NCBI RefSeq assembly: GCF_963853765.1
Contig: NC_088857.1
Location: 31,868,001-31,932,000, forward strand
DNA length: 64,000 bases
Reading direction: 5' to 3'
Source of the DNA: Magallana gigas
Lineage: Eukaryota
The translations under genes were made by a program, and so were the position numbers. Under the pieces are notes generated by a model. The model worked only from the letters and a program-made list of their open reading frames with translations, was not told the DNA's origin and made no database searches. Below, piece after piece: positions 1,232-38,398 of this stretch. Within the stretch, counting starts at the first letter, position 1. Every line of letters begins with the position of its first letter.

Positions 1232-4881
<3,650 letters not shown>

Positions 4882-5843: not shown

Positions 5844-8800
5844 ATGCGCGATCGACCATTACAACCGTTTTCCCGTATTGTCCACACCTTTGACCTACGG
5901 TGAGTGAACTTAGGAAGTCATTTATCTTGGGTGACTTTAAAACATATAAACCAATTTCTTCACAGGTGTATCATATCACATCAAAGAAAAATATATATTT
6001 GACAGATCTGACAATTTATTTAATCAGTTAATTAACGTTCTTAAAACTATAAAAGTATTCTTATGACAAGTATTTGGTTGATGTACTAATAAATGTGAAT
6101 TATACAACTAACCAACCTATTTTGAATATTTAATCACATCTATGGGAGATCAATCGCCGAGTATACTGCAATATGATAATGTTGTGCAAACAGAGCGCGC
6201 CATCTATCGACCGTGTATTGTACGATGTGGGTTTTATTGTTTTAGGGTATGTATATACATAATTAGACTTCATACTCTACCATTCTGTTCCAACTTCTAC
6301 CAGTCGGAAAACTCATAAACCGTGTTCTATCTTGAGGTCGTCAGCTACTTGAATAATTTTGCTCATATCTATACCCAATATTCATTTGAATTTTATAATA
6401 ACAAGTAAGGTCAACACTAGAACACAGCTTCTCCAATTTATCAGTCAGACTTGCAAACTGCAAGGTGTAAGACGAATTGGGGGCGGTTCTCTCTAACTGC
6501 AATACAGTTGTCTTTGGGGAGAAGGGTCTTTTATACTGATCTCCAGCAAAGTGGCTTCTTCGGTTGTGATCGTATCAGGGGTTTCCAGCGCTGCCGCCAA
6601 TTCCACAGACGAAAACATTCAAGTGGACATCATGACAGAAAACTACGCAGAGTTCGGCAAATCGACGGACCGGTCTCCCATCGTGCCCGAAATCTCTATT
6701 CGAAGCTTTACTTTTCGTGTAACTGAAATCGCTTTAGGACTGGTTGCGTTTTTGGCTGTTGTTGTGTGCATAATATTAGGATCAATGGTCAGCTCTGGTG
6801 TAGGCAATGGCTCAGATTCACCGTCCACAAGCGCTCAAGTTGGTCAAAACCAATTATGTGTATCCCCTCCATGTCTTAAAAGCGCGTCCTATGTAGTTTC
6901 CAATCTCAATACTTCTGTCAAGCCCTGTGATAATTTCTATAAATATGCTTGTGGGCGTTTCAAGATTGAAAATCCTTTGGATCCCGAAACTTCTTCGAGA
7001 ACCGTATACAGTAATATGTATTACCATAATGAAGAGAAACTCAAGAAACTTCTTGAATCCCCCATCGTCCGTAGCCAGGACTATTCCACGGAGCGGAAGT
7101 TGAAGCATTATTTTTCGTCGTGCACTGATACTTACCGGAAAGAGCGTGCTAAGGGATCACCTTTGATCACTAAGGTAATTAACAACATCGGAGGCTGGTA
7201 TGTACTCGGAACCTTCAACAACAACTCCTTTGATTTCCACAATGCCTTTCGGAAGGTCTCTGTCGATTACTGGACGGCAGCTTTCTACACGTTCCGGGTG
7301 GCAACTGACTGGTATGACTGGCATAAGAGAGTCATCGAGGTAATTTTCAGATTTTCATTACAAAAATATTCTATTGTTTTATTTTTTGCGCATTGCTTAT
7401 GTATAAAAATACCATATTTTATATGACAGTTGGACTACGCTGGTATGTCAATGTTTTGGTATTACTATACGGAACCTTCAACTGAAAAGGTTGGTATTAC
7501 ATGTAGTTATTGGTTTTCTTCATTTTTGCGGAGTAAAATTTGCCATGATCGCTTTCTAGCTTTAACAATAAACTATCTATATCTTTTCCAACGAAAGTTA
7601 TTTTTTCAAACAAAACTCTTTTCCAACATCTATGTAGAATCCTCACTTTAGAAACTACATTTTGCAACATGAGTGAGCAATTAATTGTTAACGCATTACT
7701 GATGATACTTATTCCGATGTACAACTGGCTACGAAAAAATACTAACACAAAAGATGCGAACTTATAAACTAAATTTGTAAGATTGTTTCTTTAGTATAGA
7801 AATGATATGAAGACATTCATGAGGCGTCTGGCGAATTTCCTCGTCAGAGATTCGAATATAACTTTGGACAACAATACGAAAAACGCACGTATAGAGACCT
7901 TTATCAATGACGCCTTCACCATAGAGATGAATCTAGCCAATGTAAGTACATGTATAATCCTAATTTGAAATTTGAAATAGATTTTACAGGATTATTTTTT
8001 ATAAACATGTATTAATTTTTTATGTTATTAAGAACAATGTTTTAATGGTTTAAATATATACGGTACTCATTACAAAATTTCAGATCACAAAGAACACAAT
8101 GCCAACGTCGGATCCCCACGCATACGAGAAGAGGGTGTCTATTTCTGACCTCAATACCATGCTTGGTACAGAGGTGGGTGTCCTATCAGTATGTGAGTCC
8201 ATTGTGATATGGAAGACACCCACTTAAGAGAACGCAATCTGTTAATGTATTTAGCATCATTTCTTTTTTAGATTGACTTCGCCACCCATATCCAATACAT
8301 GTTTAACGACGCCAATGTTGGTCCGTCCACAAAAATTGTTTTACGAGAAGCTGATTGGTTGAAAAAGATGAATGACATGATAGGGTCATTGGGGGCCAAT
8401 AAGACAAGGTATTTCGTAGTTTTTTTTTATAATGATATAGTTACACATTAAACAACCAATGCATCTTTCGTGTTAATAATTTTAGTTTAAACACTTAAAC
8501 ATGCCATCTCACTGATAAAGTATCTTGTAAATGAATGACAAAATAATTCTAAAGTTGGTGTTGAATAATGTAATAAAGTGATGTATAATATATTCATCAA
8601 ATGTAAATCTGTAATGGGTGATATCATATAGCAATGTAACTGAGTGTGCGAAATATGATTATATATAATAATTAGCTGTAAGTTGCCGAAAGATAGGACA
8701 ATACCATATAACATAACCTTTTACATGTAAACTTGTAAAGTAAAAAAATGTATAACCATGCGACAGAATGTTGAACAACTACCTGGTCTGGAAGGTGATG

Positions 8801-11800
8801 GATCGCTATGACGTAGAACTTTCCTGGGAGTACGTCCACGCCAGCCGCGAGTTCTACGTAGATAGGTACGGTATCCCGCAGTTCCTGGGAACCTGGCTTT
8901 ACTGTTTCCAAAACATGGATCGGTACCTTGGAGACGCGCTTAGTTCAATGTATGTCAGGGACCATTTCGCTGATAAAAATAAGGAAAAGGTGAGTTGACA
9001 TTTTTAACTCCCTCTTTGTCTTTCCTGTATAATTTTGACCTCCTTTTCATCTTTATCTTTTTTTTTGCGCAGGCTCATGAGATTCTGGACTATGTAAAGG
9101 AGGCATTGATTGACAGCACCATGCAAAACACGTTCATGGATGATGCTACAAAAGCCAGAGCGAAAGCCAAGGTAAGATTGTGTATGGCTATGCTGTTTAT
9201 CGTCTTGCATTTGACTTTGCGGACGATTCACCTCCAGGACAAATAATGAAGGAACTGGTTTTTTTATATGATGTTTAATATTTTTACTTATATGTGATTC
9301 ATTAATCCGTATTCATTTTTTACCCGAACGATTTTATTGGAAATAAAGGGGTTGGATTTATGAGGTTCTAATCCATTTCACACTTTGTTAACAGTTTACA
9401 GTGAACCAGTCTTTAATCTGTGAATGTTCTGTTAAAATCCGATCGCGAATGAGGATTTTACAACGGTTTCGATTTAGAAATTATTGAGTGCTATTGTTAA
9501 AATTTTACGATTTGAAATCTATAAAACGGTGGTTATATTTTCACCATATTGTGTTGTTAATCTTCATTAAAATACAATGTATAAGTGTCTCATACCACTT
9601 TAACATTGTTCAAAAACTGTTTTATCAATTTATCTGTTTAACAGATGCAAGGAAGCTTGGACAAACTTGGCTATCCAGATTTTATGATGAATGACGCGGC
9701 AATGGACAACCTGTACAGTAGTGTAAGTGTCAAAGTCTTCACGTAAGCTAGTTTTAACAAAAATATTTTTGCAGAGACTAACAATGCTATCCTTTTTTTA
9801 CAATGTGCACATTATTCGAATAAATAAAACTTCCTACTTACAATTAGTTGTTTTCACAATAAAAGCGTTTTTGATAATAAAATTTAAGTTCAATCTACAG
9901 TTAAAAACGGTTATAGCGAAGTGCCATGATACCAAGTGGTTTTGATTAGTTAATATACACTATACACGCATATCGCTATATAAAATTGAAAAAGGCTTCG
10001 CTGATGGCGTGATTTGGTTTTAAATGTTCTGCTGTAACCGTGTCATATCATGTTTTCAGTTTTAAGTTCTAACTACACCACATTTCCATGTATCACGTCC
10101 AAACCTTTCATAAAATCTTCCAGCTCAACGTGGACCAGTATGACTATTTCGGAAACCTCCTGAGCGTGAACAACTACATACAGAAGTCGTGGAACAAGAA
10201 ACTGAAGAACCACGTGAACAAAGAAGAGGAGTGGGTGTACCGGACGTACGACACCTTCATGTCTTACTACAACCCCTGGAACGAGCTGCTGGTGCCCGCC
10301 GGACTCCTTCAGTTCCCGTTCTACGACTACACGCTCCCTCACTTCATGAACTTTGGCTCTATGGGAAGCGTTATAGCTCACCATCTTGTCCATGGCATCG
10401 ATCACTCAGGTATTTAGTTCTCATACTAAGGTTTCATGAATGATTGTATTAATTTCATCATTTGATTGATTAATCGTATGTTAGAATAACTTTTCTTCAT
10501 GCTCGGAACAACATGTATCAGAAATTATAATTTACTTCTTTTGAATAGGTTGTTTTACAATTCATGTGAATGTTGCGTTCAAATTCAAAACGTACATGAT
10601 TATCAATACACCACATTGGGGTTCTTTCACCTTCAGGGGGATACTACAATGTGGAAGGCGTCTTTGAGGATTGGTGGAGCAACCAGACGACCAACAAGTG
10701 GATAGACGCCAAGAAGTGTGTGGAGAACTACTACAACAACCAGAGTATGGGTCCATTCACCATCCCAGGACAGACCATTCCTATCAAGGTATGTAGTATT
10801 GCCCTAGACAATTAGAGCAAAAGTGCTTTGTTCTGTGTTCCGAAACTACTTTTCATATTGCTGTGTGAATACATGGGTTTCCGTTTTACATATGATCTTA
10901 TAGAAAGAAATTTTATTAAACAAATACACCAGTTATTCAATTTTAATGTAGGACTTGTTAATCGCTCTTCAACGATACGTTGTAAAGATTTAACAACATC
11001 CTGTTTGAGTCACCTCAGAGCCTATATTTTTATTCTTATCATGTGTCTATGTTCAGGTACCAGTCAATGGATTAAGATGGTCAGCAGAAGCAATGGCTGA
11101 AACTAGTGGAGTCCAGATAGCTTACAAGGTAAACATCCTTATTTACAAACCAACTGATTTCTATCATATCTACGGTACAGTAAGGTTCACTTATTCATTA
11201 ATCAAATGATGCTAGGGATTTTATATGCATTGAACTGGGTGGAATTTATTACTTGTATTTTGTTTTGAAGGCTTACAAGAAATGGGTTCAGAAAAACGGT
11301 GGAGAGAAACTGGCTCCTGGATTAGGTCTGACCAACGACCAGATGTTCTTTGTCTCATATGCGCAGGTATACAGTTGAATGCATGTATCAACCAAAGCTA
11401 ACAATTATCGTATACTGTATATATATGTGTACATATAAAAATAAGTACATGTACATGTATAATGTCCGGGTATGTTCAAATCGAGTCCTTTTGAATTATC
11501 TTGATATGTAATAAACAAATGTTTATTTTGAAAATACCTCTTTTTAAGAAATTGATATTTTAGGTCTATTGAGTGATTCTACCGTTAAACATTAATTTTG
11601 ATTTTTTTACCCTCAGGCTAGCTGCTACAATAGAAATGACAATGTCGCCTATTACAACGCCGTCCGAGGAACAGTGTCAGAAGACATTAGGTAAAATAGA
11701 ACAGAACAATCGGCTTTTTTATTACTTTGTTCATCTGTTCATTTTGGAAAAAAAGCAAAATACGCTATCTTTGAAAAAAATTAAATGGTTGTGAAAAAAA

Positions 11801-11926
11801 AGAAATTTACGTTTCTTTTGCAGAACAAACAGTGCCTTGGCACAGATTAAGGAATTCTCAACAGCATTTAACTGTCCAGCAAAGACGGCCATGAATGCGG
11901 AAGTTAAGTGTGCCATGTATGGATAG
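5844..11926 (+). CDS. Neprilysin/ECE-like M13 family type II membrane protein, copy A, predicted non-catalytic; 821 aa from ATG 5844 or 774 aa from ATG 6632; exons 5844-5899, 6547-7339, 7430-7489, 7795-7941, 8084-8173, 8272-8408, 8767-8989, 9073-9171, 9645-9722, 10124-10409, 10637-10788, 11057-11128, 11271-11366, 11617-11690, 11824-11926
   Basis: All junctions are GT-AG and in frame (2466 nt). N-terminal TM (IALGLVAFLAVVVCIILG), CVSPPC...KPCDNFYKYACG, LGYPD, VPAGLLQFPFY, NFGSMGSVIAHHLVHGID and FNCP..MN..KC match M13 motifs. Exon 1 (5844-5899) is less certain than the rest. Confidence 0.9.
6380..6472 (+). promoter_or_regulatory. Candidate internal promoter and short non-coding exon of M13 (AT-rich box, TCAGTC initiator-like motif 6441-6446, GTAAGA donor 6467)
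   Basis: These motifs and the downstream acceptor (6546) are conserved in all three M13 copies (e.g. TCAGTC 47648, GTAAGA 47674, AG 47743). Confidence 0.4.
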
Positions 11927-15060: not shown

Positions 15061-16172
15061 TAACCTTTACTACCGCCATATTTTCTCGTAGCCAGCATAA
15101 AGATTTTTTTATTGACGGAGATGGGTAAGAACGTTAGAAGGTTTGTGAAGTTTGCATAACCGATGACCCTAAAGAAATATTAGCCACTTAATTAACAGTA
15201 CTTTTGAAGGCAACATAACCTAGAAATGCGCCTTCAGATCAAAACAGACAATATCTAATATAAATTTAACGATGTGATACATTAACCTGTAAACCTGGAA
15301 ATATCAAATAAAGAGCAGATAATTGTCGCATAAATGCTGCTGGGATAATTAGCACTCATTCAAAAATTTAAAACAGAGAAGAAAAAAGCATATGGTTGTA
15401 GCAATTTAAAAAACATTGGAAGTTTCAGGCACAAAGTTGTTGACGCATGCCTCGTCCGGAGACACAAACTGGTAAAAAAAAATCTATAGTTATAGAAATA
15501 CAATTAGTATTGAAATCTTAGCTTAAATATGACTTTTCAATCTATATTTGGAGTGAGAATACCTACAATGTAGGCATTAAATGAAAAATTATGAAAGAAA
15601 TTTTCTAGAACACTAATGTCATAGAATCTGTGGTTTATGTTGAATATCTGTGCTATGAAGTAAAATGTCATTTTGTACAAATGTGCAATTTGATCAGAAA
15701 GTTTTATAAATTTAGCTGCAGATTGACTCGTGAAAGGTTTTTTTTTGGTCCTGACATTTGCCACGCAACTATTGATGATCAAATTAACAAACCATTTTCA
15801 AATATTTGAATTTAATGAAGTTAAAATTAAAGTTTCTGATTATAAGATTTATCATTTTGAAAAGTTGTATGATAGATTTGCATTTTGATTGTAAAACCGT
15901 ATCAAATGCCTTTCTGCTTTAAAGTATGTACTGATTTTAGTATTTGAGTTTATATGGAGAGAGAGAGATAGTGCATAAATGTCATATTATGTGAGCAAAA
16001 AGTACGTTATTTTCTTTAACGATCGGAGAAAAAAAAGGCACGTAAACAGGAAACAAGTGCGATAGCTGCATTAATTAGTTTTCATTTGTTTCCTTATTTG
16101 GTAAATGATATTAATTGTATATCAAACGATGAGCTCGTCTACAGTGAATACATCACTGCTTTTGGGAGAACA

Positions 16173-17357
16173 ATGAGGGCGGTTTATCTGGTTCTGGCTT
16201 TCTGTCTGCAGCAAGGCGTTGAGGGGTACACCTTAGATCAGGAGACACAGCTCCATGCAAATCTTACCACCGAATATGATCGGAAGATTAGACCTTTTAA
16301 AAATCAAACGGAACCCATACAAATCAGCATGGACTTTTACATGGAAAAACTCAAAGAGTTCTCGGAAAAGGAAAATAAGATAAGCGTCGTGGGATCTCTC
16401 TCTATAGAATGGAAAGATTTTCGTCTCACTTGGGATCCAACAGACTATGATGGCGATCTGAATCAAACATCTCTTTTTGTTTCTGATATATGGGCACCGA
16501 ATTTGTTTTTGTTAAATCCGTATGAAAAACAAACGCCAATTCTTTCAGATGGTACTGCCTGTACTATACAGGCCAATGGATATGTAACATGCCTGCTGGC
16601 TGACAATTTTGAAACAACGTGCAGTGCCGATATTTCGAATTACCCCTTTGATACTCAGATCTGTACATTGAAATTTTATGTTCAAGGATCTTTTGCTTCA
16701 AACACACTTCTCCAAAATGCATCATCAACCATTCGCTTGGACTTATATGAAATCCATGGACTGTGGTATCTAACCGGCACACGTAATTATATTCAAACGT
16801 ATCGGATTCGTGGGATGAGTTGTGAAGTTTTGCAACTTGAACTTAAAATGAAAAGGCGAAACAGCTATTGCGTATATAACATTTTGCTGCCAATCTTTTT
16901 TATAAATCTCATTCAGTTGTTTGTTTTCTTTTTGCCCTTGGAATCAGGCAAGAGAGTTGGTTTTTCCATGAAAGTTCTTTTATCTGTAGTAGTATTTTTC
17001 ACCATCATTCAAAGCAAATTGCCCGAGTTTTCTAAACCAAGTTTATCATCCCTTACTTTTAAACTGTTAGCTGATTTCCTGACTAGTATCTTTATTGTGT
17101 TATTTGTAGTAGTAATAAGCTTCATTTATCATAACAATAATCACGAAAGAATACCCAGTTTTATCAGAGAACATATCGAAAAAACAAAGGAAAAAAATGG
17201 TAATGAAAAAGAACTCAACATTACTTGGAAAGACGTTGCAAAGCTTCTAAATCGATGGGTTAGTAGATTAATTTTCGTTTGTTTGTATTTTAACTTTTCA
17301 TTTTATATGATTTTCAACCAAGTTACTTCTGTAAACGAGGTCGAAATTTCAAAATAA
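16173..17357 (+). CDS. Intronless Cys-loop ligand-gated ion channel subunit (nAChR-like, non-alpha), copy A, 394 aa
   Basis: Single ORF with signal peptide, WKDFRLTWDP, IWAPNLFL, Cys-loop CSADISNYPFDTQIC (C-x13-C), KRR-M1 (NILLPIFF), LPLESG-M2, M3 and M4. No vicinal CC in loop C. Confidence 0.93.
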   Translation: MRAVYLVLAFCLQQGVEGYTLDQETQLHANLTTEYDRKIRPFKNQTEPIQISMDFYMEKLKEFSEKENKISVVGSLSIEWKDFRLTWDPTDYDGDLNQTSLFVSDIWAPNLFLLNPYEKQTPILSDGTACTIQANGYVTCLLADNFETTCSADISNYPFDTQICTLKFYVQGSFASNTLLQNASSTIRLDLYEIHGLWYLTGTRNYIQTYRIRGMSCEVLQLELKMKRRNSYCVYNILLPIFFINLIQLFVFFLPLESGKRVGFSMKVLLSVVVFFTIIQSKLPEFSKPSLSSLTFKLLADFLTSIFIVLFVVVISFIYHNNNHERIPSFIREHIEKTKEKNGNEKELNITWKDVAKLLNRWVSRLIFVCLYFNFSFYMIFNQVTSVNEVEISK

Positions 17358-34065: not shown

Positions 34066-37000
34066 CAAAGTGGCTTCTTCGGTTGTGATAGCATCAGGGG
34101 TTTCCAGTGCTGCCGCCAATTCCACGGAAGAAAACATTCAAGAGGAAACCATGACAGAAAACTACGCAGAGTTCGAAAAATCGACCGAGCGGTTTCCCTA
34201 GGTGCTCGAAATCTCCATTCGTAGCTTCACTTTTCGTGTAAGTGAAATCCCTTTAGGACTGATTGCGATTTTGGCTGTTATTGTGTGCATAATAATAGGA
34301 TCAATGGTCAGTTGACTGGCATAAGAGAGTCATCTGGGTAATCAGATTTTCATTAGAAACATATTTCTGTTGTTTTATTTTTCGCGCTTTGGTAATGAAT
34401 AAAAATATCATTTTTTGTTTGACAGTTGGATTACGCTGGTATGTCAATGTATTGGTATTACTATACGGAACCTTCAACTGAAAAGGATGGTATTAGTTAT
34501 TGGTTTTACTTCATTTTTGCGGAGTAAAATTTGCCATAATCGCTTTCTAACTTTAACAATAAACTATCTAGTTTTTCTTTTTCTAACATAAATGTAGAAT
34601 CCTCACTGTAGAAAGTACATTTTGCAACATAAGTGACTGAGCAATTAGTTGTTAGCGCATTACTTATGGTACTTATTCAAAAGTACAACTGGCTACGAAA
34701 TGAAATTAACACCAAAGATGCGAACTTATGAACTTCATTCATAATTTGTTCCTGTTGTACAGAAACGATATGGAGACATTCATGAGGCGTCTGGCGAATT
34801 CCCTCGTCAGAGATTCGAATATAACTTTGGGCAACAATCCAAAACGGCACGTATAGAGACCTTCATCAACGACGCCTTTACGCCTTTAGAGATGAATTTA
34901 TCCAATGTACGTACACATAATCCTAATTTTAAATTTTAAATAGAATGTACACTATCATTTCTTATAAACATTTAACTTTTTTCTCCAAATTGACATTTCT
35001 ATAAAAGGAATAATATTTTCTATTTTTATGTTGATAAGAACACTGTTTTAATGTTTTACATATCTACGGTACTCATTACAAAATTTCAGATCACAAAGAA
35101 CACAATGCCAACGTCGGACCCCCACGCTTACGAGAAGAGGGTGTCCATATCTGACCTCAATACCATGCTTGGTACAGAGGTGGGTGTCCTATCAGTCTGT
35201 AAGTTCATTTTAAAGCTGATTGGTTGAAAAGGGTGAATGACATGATAGGGTCATTGGGGGCCAATAAGACAAGGTATTTCGTGGGTTTTTTTTAATGATG
35301 ATATAGTTACACATTCAACAACCAATGCTTCTTGCGTGGAAGTTGGATTATTTATAATTTCAGTTTTTTAACACTTACATACCATCTCACTGATAAAGTA
35401 TCTTGTAAATAAATGTAAAAATAATTCTAAAGTTGGTGTTGAATAATGTAATAATGTGATGTATAATATATTCATCAAATGTAAATTTGTAATGGGCGAT
35501 ATCATATAGCAATGTAACTGAGAGTGCGAAATATGATTATATATATATATATATAACATGTATATCACATGCAGAATGTTGAACAACTACCTGGTCTGGA
35601 AGGTGATGGATCCCTATGACGTAGAACTTTCCGGGGAGTATGTCCCCGCCAGCCGCGAGTTTTACGTAGATAGGGTGTGTTCCCGTTGTGCACACATTTG
35701 ATAATTGGGTATAGAGCAATAGGTGTAATTTGTGTTGTGATAGCAATTATAGTCTGCTTTCAGTCAAAGATTTTACCAGGATTTTTTACTTGTGTTTAAT
35801 TATTCATTCATCAGCGCCATGAAACAAGAAATATATAGATATTTTGTTGTGTTTTAGACTTATCTAATAACTAATAACTGTCACCATTTTTTTTCACGTG
35901 ATAAAATAAAGATCATATTAATATTATTAGTCTTAAATTTCCGCTGACTGATAAGAAAAATAAGGATTAGAAGACTTTTACATTTTTGCCCATTTACTTT
36001 TAATATAAAACTCGATGAATTGAGGACAAATTGCTGGTCCCGAGCCAATTGGAAGCTGATTCAGTGGATAATTATATGATAAAGGGGAAAACTACACGGA
36101 CAGTCATGTGGGGTACTCCGTGTCTCTTTTTATAACTTGCATTGTAGCTGCAAAATATGTAAAACGCACGTTTATAATTGGTTGTTTGGTATCAACAGAA
36201 AGATGATTATGAAAAGAAACTGACCTTTATCACAAAATATTTCAATCTTCGAAGTAGCAGCCTTGACAGTAGATCTTATGATCGACATCACCGCTTTAGT
36301 ATATTGCGGGTCACTTTTCTGGATTTTCAAATCAGTAGCTCAATAAATTCCGACAAAAATAATAATTTAAGTACATGTAAATATTGATTCGATATACCTC
36401 AAACTGAAGAAGGTTGAAAATGTTTGAATCAGGTCTACATTTGAAAGGTTTTGTGAAAAAATATTTTCAGTTTTTGAAGCATATAAAAGTGCCTATTTAT
36501 CATCATATCATCATACATTAATTTGTCTAATAGTATTTTCTTCGATTATTCAAGCCACAGCATAAATGAAAATAATTAGCAGCGTTTTCTTTAGACACAT
36601 ATCCTCCATTTATGTAAGCAAAAACAATTAATGAATATTAATATATGATATTTTCTTTTCAAACTTGTAGCTGGAACTGGAACGAGCTGCTGGTGCCCGC
36701 CGGACTCCTTAAGTTCTCGTTCTACGACTACATGCTCCCTCACTTCATGAACTTTGGCTCTATGGGAAGCCATATAGCTCACCATCTTGTTTATGGCATC
36801 GATCACTCAGGTATTTTGTCATCTTAATAAGTTTCAATGAATTATTGTATCAATTTCATCATTTGATTTTTCAATCGTATGTTATAACGACTTTTCTTCA
36901 TTTTGAATTAAAATTATACATAAAGACCTTTTATGACCAGCTGTGTTCAGTGACATGCTAGGAACAACATGTATCGGAAATAATAATTTAATTCGTTGGA

Positions 37001-38398
37001 ATAGGGTGTTTTACAATTCATGTGAATATTTCATTCAAATTCAGAACTTACATAATTATCCATAAAACACATTGAGTTTCTTTCACTTCAGGTGGATACT
37101 ACAATGTGGAGGGCGTGTTTGAGGATTGTTGGAGCAACAGGACGACCAACAAGTGGATAGACGCCAAGAAGTGTGTGGAGAACTACTACAACAACCAGAG
37201 CATGGGTCCATTCACCATCCCAGGACAGACCATTCCTGTCAAGGTCTCTGGTATTGTCCTGGACCATTAGAGCAAACGTGCTTTCTTCCGTGTTCCGAAA
37301 CTATTTTTCATATTGCTGTGTGAATTCCTGGTTTTCCGTTTTATATATGATCTTATAGAATAGAAATTTTATTAAATACACAACTTTTTCAATCTTATTA
37401 AAGTAGGACTTGTTAATCGCTCTTCAACGATACGTTGTAAAGATTTAACAACATCCTGTTTGAGTCACCTCAGAGCCTATATTTTTATTCTTATCATGTG
37501 TCTATGTTCAGGTACCAGTCAATGGATTAAGATGGTCAGCAGAAGCAATGGCTGAAACTAGTGGAGTCCAGATAGCTTACAAGGTAAACATCCTTATTTA
37601 CAAACCAACTGATTTCTATCATATCTACGGTACAGTAAGGTTCACTTATTCATTAATCAAATGATGCTAGGGATTTTATATGCATTGAACTGGGTGGAAT
37701 TTATTACTTGTATTTTGTTTTGAAGGCTTACAAGAAATGGGTTCAGAAGAACGGTGGAGAGAAACTGGCTCCTGGATTAGGTCTGACCAACGACCAGATG
37801 TTCTTTGTCTCATATGCGCAGGTATACAATGTTAATGCATGCATTAACCAAAGCTAGCAGTTACTCGTCGTATACTATATACAATGTATATAAATATAAA
37901 AATAAAAATACATGTAACTATATTGTCCGCGAAGGTCAAAATAGAGTTCTTTTGAAATATCTTGATATACAATAAACAAATGTTTTTTTTGAAAATACCT
38001 CTTTTTATTAATAAAATTTTTATATTTTAGGTGTATTTTGGCGATTCTACTGTTAAACATTAATATTGATTTCGTTTACACTCAGGCTAGCTACTACAAT
38101 AGAAATGACAATGTCGCCTACTACAATGCCGTCCGAGGAACAGTGTCGGAAGACATTAGGTAAAACAGAACAGAACAATCTGCTATTTTATTGCTTTGTT
38201 CATCTGTTCATTTTGAAAAAAAAAACCCCAAAATATGCTTTGATAAAAGTTTAATGGTCCTGAAAATTAAAGCGAAATTTACATACATTTTGCAGAACAA
38301 ACAGTGCCTTGGCACAGATTAAGGAATTCTCAACAGAATTTAACTGTCCAGCAAAGACGCCCATGAATGCGGAAGTTAAGTGTGCCATGTATGGATAG
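34066..38398 (+). pseudogene. M13/neprilysin-like pseudogene, copy B
   Basis: ATG 34151 followed by TAG at 34199-34201; ~520-bp deletion in exon 2; exon 3 donor GT>GA; frameshift in exon 4; 5' part of exon 6 deleted; exon 7 to mid exon 10 replaced by ~1 kb of unrelated DNA; motif reads HHLVY. Exons 11-15 recognisable. Confidence 0.92.

Follow-up and report, generated by a model that had tools for sequence, protein, structure and literature searches.

The 64,000 nucleotides of Magallana gigas contig NC_088857.1 analysed here (the window) carry three tandem copies of one gene, whose product is related to the M13 peptidases neprilysin and endothelin-converting enzyme 1 (ECE-1). We conclude that the encoded protein is probably a type II membrane-anchored, glycosylated pseudo-peptidase with the M13 fold, which would still carry a metal and bind a ligand without cleaving it. 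The conserved feature, as judged from the alignments, is the metal triad without any of the catalytic residues.

A self-comparison of the window placed the three copies at ~6.2-12 kb (copy A), 33.6-38.4 kb (copy B) and 47.2-53.3 kb (copy C). The model of copy A was assembled by hand, led by the homologues found in a HMMER search of the whole library. Its translation is identical at every residue to RefSeq XP_011450746.3, which is annotated as "endothelin-converting enzyme 1 [Magallana gigas]". Copy C is an intact paralogue with 33 amino-acid differences from copy A and is 99.5% identical to a partial C. gigas protein. Copy B is a pseudogene: exon 1 is shortened to 161 nucleotides and contains an in-frame stop, exon 3 has insertions and deletions, exons 5, 6 and 9 survive in truncated form, exons 7 and 8 not at all, and several splice sites are lost. 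A search of the whole oyster genome with the exon 9 peptide returned no copies beyond the three in the window. The coordinates of the copies and their motifs are collected in Table 1.

The family assignment, for which the original prediction had proposed a HMMER check, is clear. Both Peptidase_M13_N (PF05649, 6.8e-69, residues 98-499) and Peptidase_M13 (PF01431, 7.7e-41, residues 561-771) were matched above the Pfam cut-offs. An AlphaFold model based on an alignment of 52 sequences reached a mean predicted local distance difference test score (pLDDT) of 89 and a predicted template modelling score (pTM) of 0.82, with an N-terminal helix at 30-54. Foldseek aligned this model to neprilysin and ECE-1 with E ~1e-40 and template modelling scores of 0.72-0.83. 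The oyster protein is thus predicted to have the complete two-lobed M13 fold. Its single membrane anchor lies near the N-terminus and contains the most hydrophobic 19-mer of the copy A protein; we looked for a second hydrophobic segment in this protein and saw none. The topology is type II, with a short tail in the cytoplasm and the M13 domain outside the cell. The oyster protein is about 26-28% identical to human ECE-1 and neprilysin (PDB 3DWB and 1DMT) and shares with them both Pfam domains, the type II anchor, the fold and the disulfide cysteines; ten ectodomain Cys are conserved with the active M13 proteins.

Residue equivalences were read from the HMMER alignment of the full oyster protein with the human neprilysin and ECE-1 structures. 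In phmmer ECE-1 was matched at 1.5e-92 and neprilysin at ~1e-79, and the whole ectodomain was aligned. The oyster protein has in common with both enzymes the zinc ligands H583, H587 and E646 (neprilysin numbering), which are H600, H604 and E671 in copy A, the second-shell Asp D590 (D607) and R717 (R741). In contrast, the general base E584 (Glu584) is H601, N542 is F559 and D650 is E675, the last being a conservative change. Under either alignment there is no His at the equivalent of H711: residues 735-737 of copy A read T/V/S, and residue 735 is L in copy C. In the terminal C746xxW749 the Cys is kept (C770) and the Trp is replaced by Tyr (Y773). Compared with a catalytic M13 enzyme the oyster protein therefore lacks HExxH, the D650 of ENIAD, NAY/FY, His711 and CxxW, and it retains the triad H583/H587/E646. 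N542, E584, D650, H711 and W749 are present in all 14 active M13 proteins compared, and the full set occurs in no member of the clade described below. The equivalents of W693, V692 and F106, which line the hydrophobic S1' pocket of neprilysin, are altered as well (W693 to S, V692 to A, F106 to S in copy A and to R in copy C). The full-protein alignment agrees at every point with the hand alignment of the original prediction, namely the kept ligands with E646 in AEAMAE, the changes of E584 to His, NAFY to FMSY and D650 to E, the replacement of H711 (T in A, L in C), the kept R717 and the ending CAMYG in place of CxxW. The HHLVHGID codons of both intact copies were confirmed too, and the decayed copy B retains HH, as had been claimed.

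We then compared the gene model with contigs from four public runs, which belong to four studies and carry two organism codes. The contigs sit on the exons and skip the introns; intron bins are at zero depth and hence the runs are RNA. Twelve of the 13 copy A introns were found in the contigs as GT..AG joints at the coordinates of the model, and for the 13th (8989/9073) the contigs have loose ends that match its borders. In all four runs contigs span the 282 bases 10124-10405 with zero differing letters, which excludes GAG or GAA at the critical codon; reads of that kind, which the original prediction had named as evidence against it, do not occur in the RNA contigs of the four runs. Letters specific to copy C were observed in contigs of runs X6, X9 and X14 (exons 7 and 10, e.g. 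the F619H codon) and letters specific to copy A in X3, so both copies are transcribed. A separate signal was seen at 7972-8155, where three RNA runs have loose contig ends at 7972 and the depth is raised over intron 3 and exon 4. It suggests another transcript, an alternative exon or an overlapping repeat.

The intact copies are under purifying selection. Between A and C the synonymous rate (dS) is 0.184 and the non-synonymous rate (dN) 0.021, giving a dN/dS of 0.11, whereas the introns are only ~76% identical; the constraint first claimed for this gene is borne out by this ratio. The count reported for a single exon, 9 synonymous changes against 0 replacements between A and C, was reproduced as well; this exon is 11057-11128, numbered 11 here, and encodes AEAMAE.

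A further observation concerns exon 9. Between 10124-10409 (A) and 51419-51704 (C) only 1 of 286 bases differs (99.7% identity), compared with 87.5-97.4% identity for the other exons, and on either side the identity falls to 70-85% no more than 10 bases into the flanking intron. This exon would be expected to carry about 10 synonymous differences (Poisson P about 4e-4). Its near-identity could be due to gene conversion bounded by the exon or to a constraint on its synonymous sites.

To see how far the residue pattern extends we considered the homologues. Among the 150 library representatives nearest to the motif exon the distant ones have HExxH, whereas most of the nearest ~45 do not (HY, HF, HM, RQ, RF, KH). 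Those with names are listed as "endothelin-converting enzyme (1-like / homolog)" of bivalves, gastropods, nemerteans, an annelid, a brachiopod, a bryozoan and amphioxus. In a tree of 77 full-length proteins (IQ-TREE, LG+G4, quick search, Shimodaira-Hasegawa-like approximate likelihood ratio test (SH-aLRT) support, built without fly Nepl sequences) these homologues form one clade of 63 rows with 100% SH-aLRT support, nested among active M13 proteins. H711 and the Trp of CxxW are missing throughout the clade, and a few basal members (a bryozoan, nemerteans and two unnamed sequences) retain HExxH or HExxN. This indicates that the loss of Glu584 followed that of H711, N542 and CxxW, although long branches in this region of the tree call for caution about the order of deep events and about where amphioxus is placed. 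The tree thus places the oyster protein in an old, mostly lophotrochozoan clade with a stepwise loss of catalytic residues.

Within this clade the bivalve sequences form a subclade of 23 rows (97% support), beside which stand sequences of a vent snail, abalone and limpet; together they make up the orthologue set of the oyster gene. Residues were counted in 17 bivalve and 4 basal-gastropod sequences. Their overall identity is about 45-50%, and 108 of the 774 positions (14%) are invariant. H583, H587 and D590 are invariant in all 21 orthologues, and the positions of E646 and D650 each have Glu in 20 of the 21. No orthologue retains the Asn of N542, the Trp of W693 or the His of H711; R741 (R717) is retained in most bivalves. 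The combination of lost catalytic residues and kept metal ligands therefore holds far beyond the two copies in which it was first noticed. In the caenogastropod orthologues, which have [RK]QxxH together with LALGE, H583 and E646 are lost and with them two of the three metal ligands.

The former general-base position varies. It is Tyr in Pinctada, Mytilus, Tegillarca, Pecten, Ylistrum, unionids, Mercenaria, Ruditapes and Mya, and it is His in five oyster species (all HHLVHGID), in Argopecten and in the vent snail Gigantopelta. One Tegillarca paralogue has Phe, Haliotis has Asn and Patella has Gln. Three changes suffice at this position across the 23 bivalve rows. As Tyr occurs in every major bivalve lineage it is the parsimonious state of the bivalve ancestor, and the oyster codon CAT is one transition away from TAT. 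On this reconstruction the oyster His is a recent replacement of the ancestral bivalve Tyr and no designed fourth ligand. A single designed change from Glu to His is ruled out by the ancestral Tyr. Of the two parts of the original prediction, the probably non-proteolytic M13 homologue is supported, given the lost general base, His and Asn, the kept ligands and second-shell acids and the constraint on the gene. The saturated His3-Glu site does not stand as a conserved feature: a fourth residue that is usually Tyr, and also Phe, Asn or Gln, indicates no such specific site, and His is confined to the oysters, Argopecten and Gigantopelta.

Two observations on single species belong here. The scallops Argopecten (HHLVH) and Pecten (HYLVH) fall into the same 90% cluster and their proteins are otherwise near-identical; this is a second, independent switch between Tyr and His at the same position. 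Among the library representatives the Tegillarca granosa protein (609 amino acids) comes closest to the motif exon, and its model skips several exons including the GENIAD equivalent. This is probably an annotation gap rather than biology.

We infer a loss of peptidase activity in the oyster protein because it has lost its general base together with the transition-state His and the substrate-backbone Asn, because neprilysin with the substitution E584V serves as an inactive control enzyme (PMC4954676) and because the protein falls under the definition of the neprilysin-like (Nepl) proteins. These have significant similarity to neprilysin and are without one or more of HExxH, ENIAD, CxxW and NAY/FY (PMC8223033); in the oyster protein all four motifs are altered. 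Going by the residue pattern, members of the clade almost certainly do not cleave peptides. Metal occupancy and a binding function, which we likewise infer, would work as follows. Zinc or another metal is probably still held in the closed M13 chamber by H600, H604 and E671, with D607 and E675 behind them. The protein would then bind a ligand, in all likelihood a peptide, without cutting it, either sequestering it or capturing it like a receptor, as has been proposed for Drosophila Nepl15. Since the bivalve-gastropod split, which is placed in the Cambrian, the metal triad and its second shell have persisted and the catalytic residues have not; this argues for selection on metal binding or on local structure.

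Several points weigh against this interpretation. The remodelled, polar S1' pocket speaks against the usual hydrophobic M13 substrates and suggests a ligand unlike them. The idea that a peptide is bound draws on analogy. Caenogastropods do without H583 and E646 and hence the function of the clade cannot depend on the metal everywhere. In bivalves the metal triad might be kept only for structural reasons, and some chemistry is conceivable in principle where a His or Tyr lies beside a water bound to zinc.

In the main rival the residues of the metal site would be a structural leftover. The protein would function at the cell surface by contacts of its outer faces with other proteins, and neither the chamber nor the metal would play a part. 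The caenogastropod orthologues persist with two of three ligands lost, the Glu584 position has drifted, with H, Y, F, N or Q in different orthologues, and residue 735 differs between copies A and C, all of which would fit such a role. An outer-surface role has been proposed for Drosophila Gone early (Goe) or inactive ADAMs, and Goe has substitutions at all key sites and functions in vivo (PMC11266112). However, the 21 orthologues, in which just 14% of the positions are invariant, all share H583, H587 and D590 and nearly all share E646 and E675, and no part of the gene is more conserved than the exon bearing the motif. We therefore consider a mere leftover rather improbable.

A second rival is a hydrolase with altered chemistry, in which a zinc-bound water would be activated by His601 (Tyr in other bivalves) and which would act on an unusual substrate or at a special pH. 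The metal triad and the second-shell acids are complete, R741 is retained in most bivalves, and as a matter of general chemistry His and Tyr can serve in acid-base or metal-ligand roles. On the other hand E584, H711 and N542, three independent catalytic or substrate-binding elements, are missing together, and Phe, Asn and Gln are tolerated among the orthologues at the position that would have to activate the water. The E584V enzyme is an inactive control in neprilysin work (PMC4954676) and the same losses of the general base mark accepted pseudo-peptidases (PMC11266112). Residual or altered hydrolysis by the oyster protein is thus quite unlikely. Finally, that the HH is an assembly or annotation error, or that A and C are young pseudogenes like the decayed one of the three copies (B), is refuted by RNA contigs of four studies with the same letters and correct splicing, by HHLVHGID in five oyster species and by two intact 774-codon frames with a dN/dS of 0.11 at a dS of 0.18.

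The preferred reading of a metal-bound pseudo-peptidase can be taken one step further for bivalves and basal gastropods. Here the intact zinc site without catalysis, kept since before the two groups separated, might be a binding centre for a peptide or small ligand, with the Tyr or His holding the ligand or capping the metal, and the protein would be a metal-dependent, non-degrading neuropeptide receptor or buffer. We put this forward tentatively and think it doubtful; if true, the role would be one that no M13 protein is known to have.

Pseudo-peptidases of this kind are already known. M13 homologues that are inactive have been well described as a class from flies and nematodes (PMC2259306, PMC8223033) and are included in a 2024 review of pseudo-peptidases (PMC11266112). 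Drosophila has 21 Nepl genes (PMC8223033), and a peptide-sequestration model has been presented for Nepl15 (PMC7822871). Like the oyster gene, the Drosophila Nepl genes such as Gone early and Nepl15 are expressed, conserved and often tandem duplicates, with proposed non-catalytic roles such as peptide sequestration. They differ in that Goe (EAxxD...V) and Nepl15 (two ligands changed to Arg) lost zinc ligands, whereas the oyster protein keeps the whole triad, and in that most Nepls are secreted, whereas the oyster protein is membrane-anchored. The fly expansions are reported to be specific to Drosophila (PMC2259306), which makes an independent origin of the oyster clade likely.

The HHxxH motif has precedents as well, namely the inactive M12 homologues ADAM29 (HHLGH) and ADAM7 (HQLGH) (PMC11266112, table 2). 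In these the Glu of HExxH is replaced by His or Gln and the His ligands are kept, but they are multidomain adhesion proteins of the M12 metzincin fold and share no homology with the oyster protein beyond the short motif. In the M14 pseudo-carboxypeptidases AEBP1, CPXM2 and CPD-III the general base E270 is changed to Tyr (PMC11266112). The replacement of a general-base Glu by Tyr matches the ancestral bivalve state, and these proteins, which retain some of the metal site, work through binding, but their fold and family are unrelated.

What is new is this mis-annotated mollusc clade with its long-preserved metal site. We searched the literature for the RefSeq accessions and for inactive M13 proteins in molluscs and did not find the clade described as inactive, with subscription journals mostly outside the scope of the search and a MEROPS listing as non-peptidase homologue possible. 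Papers on the pearl oyster and scallop treat members of the clade as active, peptide-processing ECE (PMC7820862, PMC13212745). The name "endothelin-converting enzyme 1(-like)", used across mollusc genomes, implies an activity that the residues do not support and, given the residue pattern, the inferences of ECE activity in mollusc papers need revisiting. The clade also provides a dated, stepwise series of the death of an M13 enzyme, with H711, N542 and CxxW going first, then Glu584, then the metal ligands in some snails. As the metal site has outlived catalysis since the bivalve-gastropod split it is a useful test case for the role of metal sites in pseudo-peptidases. Otherwise this is an ordinary case of a well-known phenomenon.

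Table 1. Coordinates of the three gene copies, their motifs and the canonical M13 loci of the oyster genome (positions are those of the window unless a contig is named)
Feature	Position	Strand	Description
Copy A, complete coding region of the putative M13 pseudo-peptidase	6632-11926	+	14 coding exons, 774 amino acids, introns all GT..AG
Copy A, exons 1-7	6632-7339, 7430-7489, 7795-7941, 8084-8173, 8272-8408, 8767-8989, 9073-9171	+	
Copy A, exons 8-14	9645-9722, 10124-10409, 10637-10788, 11057-11128, 11271-11366, 11617-11690, 11824-11926	+	
Copy A, predicted membrane anchor	6722-6790	+	about residues 31-53
Copy A, exon 9	10124-10409	+	encodes FMSY (for NAFY), HHLVH and the Asp of GID
Copy A, HHLVH	10379-10393	+	codons CAC CAT CTT GTC CAT; zinc ligands H600 and H604, H601 in place of the general base Glu584
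Copy A, AEAMAE (for GENIAD)	11084-11101	+	E671, third zinc ligand (E646); E675 replaces D650
Copy A, TVSEDI (equivalent of neprilysin H711..R717)	11671-11690	+	without His; R741 retained, split across the intron to 11824
Copy A, CAMYG and stop codon (for CxxW)	11909-11926	+	C-terminus
Copy B, pseudogene	34151-38398	+	
Copy B, HHLVY	36780-36794	+	
Copy C, intact paralogue	47829-53322	+	14 exons with the lengths of copy A; open 774-codon frame
Copy C, HHLVH	51674-51688	+	
Canonical M13 loci	contig C3 12.60-12.71, 24.54, 26.63, 28.66, 46.90 and 51.82 Mb; C1 20.95 Mb; C8 13.65 Mb		

Beyond the reach of the exon 9 peptide search, a Pfam profile search of the oyster genome identified at least ten further M13 loci, all on other chromosomes, whose exons have the canonical HE[ILM]TH; the count is a lower bound from a search that ran exon by exon. 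At least three of them form a cluster at 12.6-12.7 Mb of contig C3. Ordinary M13 peptidases thus coexist with these genes in the oyster. Two other genes were encountered next to the copies in the window. Intronless open reading frames at 16086-17357 (423 amino acids) and 41870-43093 (407 amino acids), both on the + strand, encode a subunit of a Cys-loop ligand-gated channel (Neur_chan_LBD 5.9e-35, Neur_chan_memb 8.3e-12). They lie in ~92% identical repeat blocks downstream of copies A and B, which indicates that they were duplicated together with the M13 gene. Upstream of copy A, at about 3502-4001 (+), there is a LITAF-like zinc-ribbon gene (zf-LITAF-like 2.5e-07 on 3810-4001). One UniProt model of 948 amino acids fuses the LITAF-like and M13 genes, and as a result LITAF proteins of 133 amino acids are drawn into the same 90% cluster.

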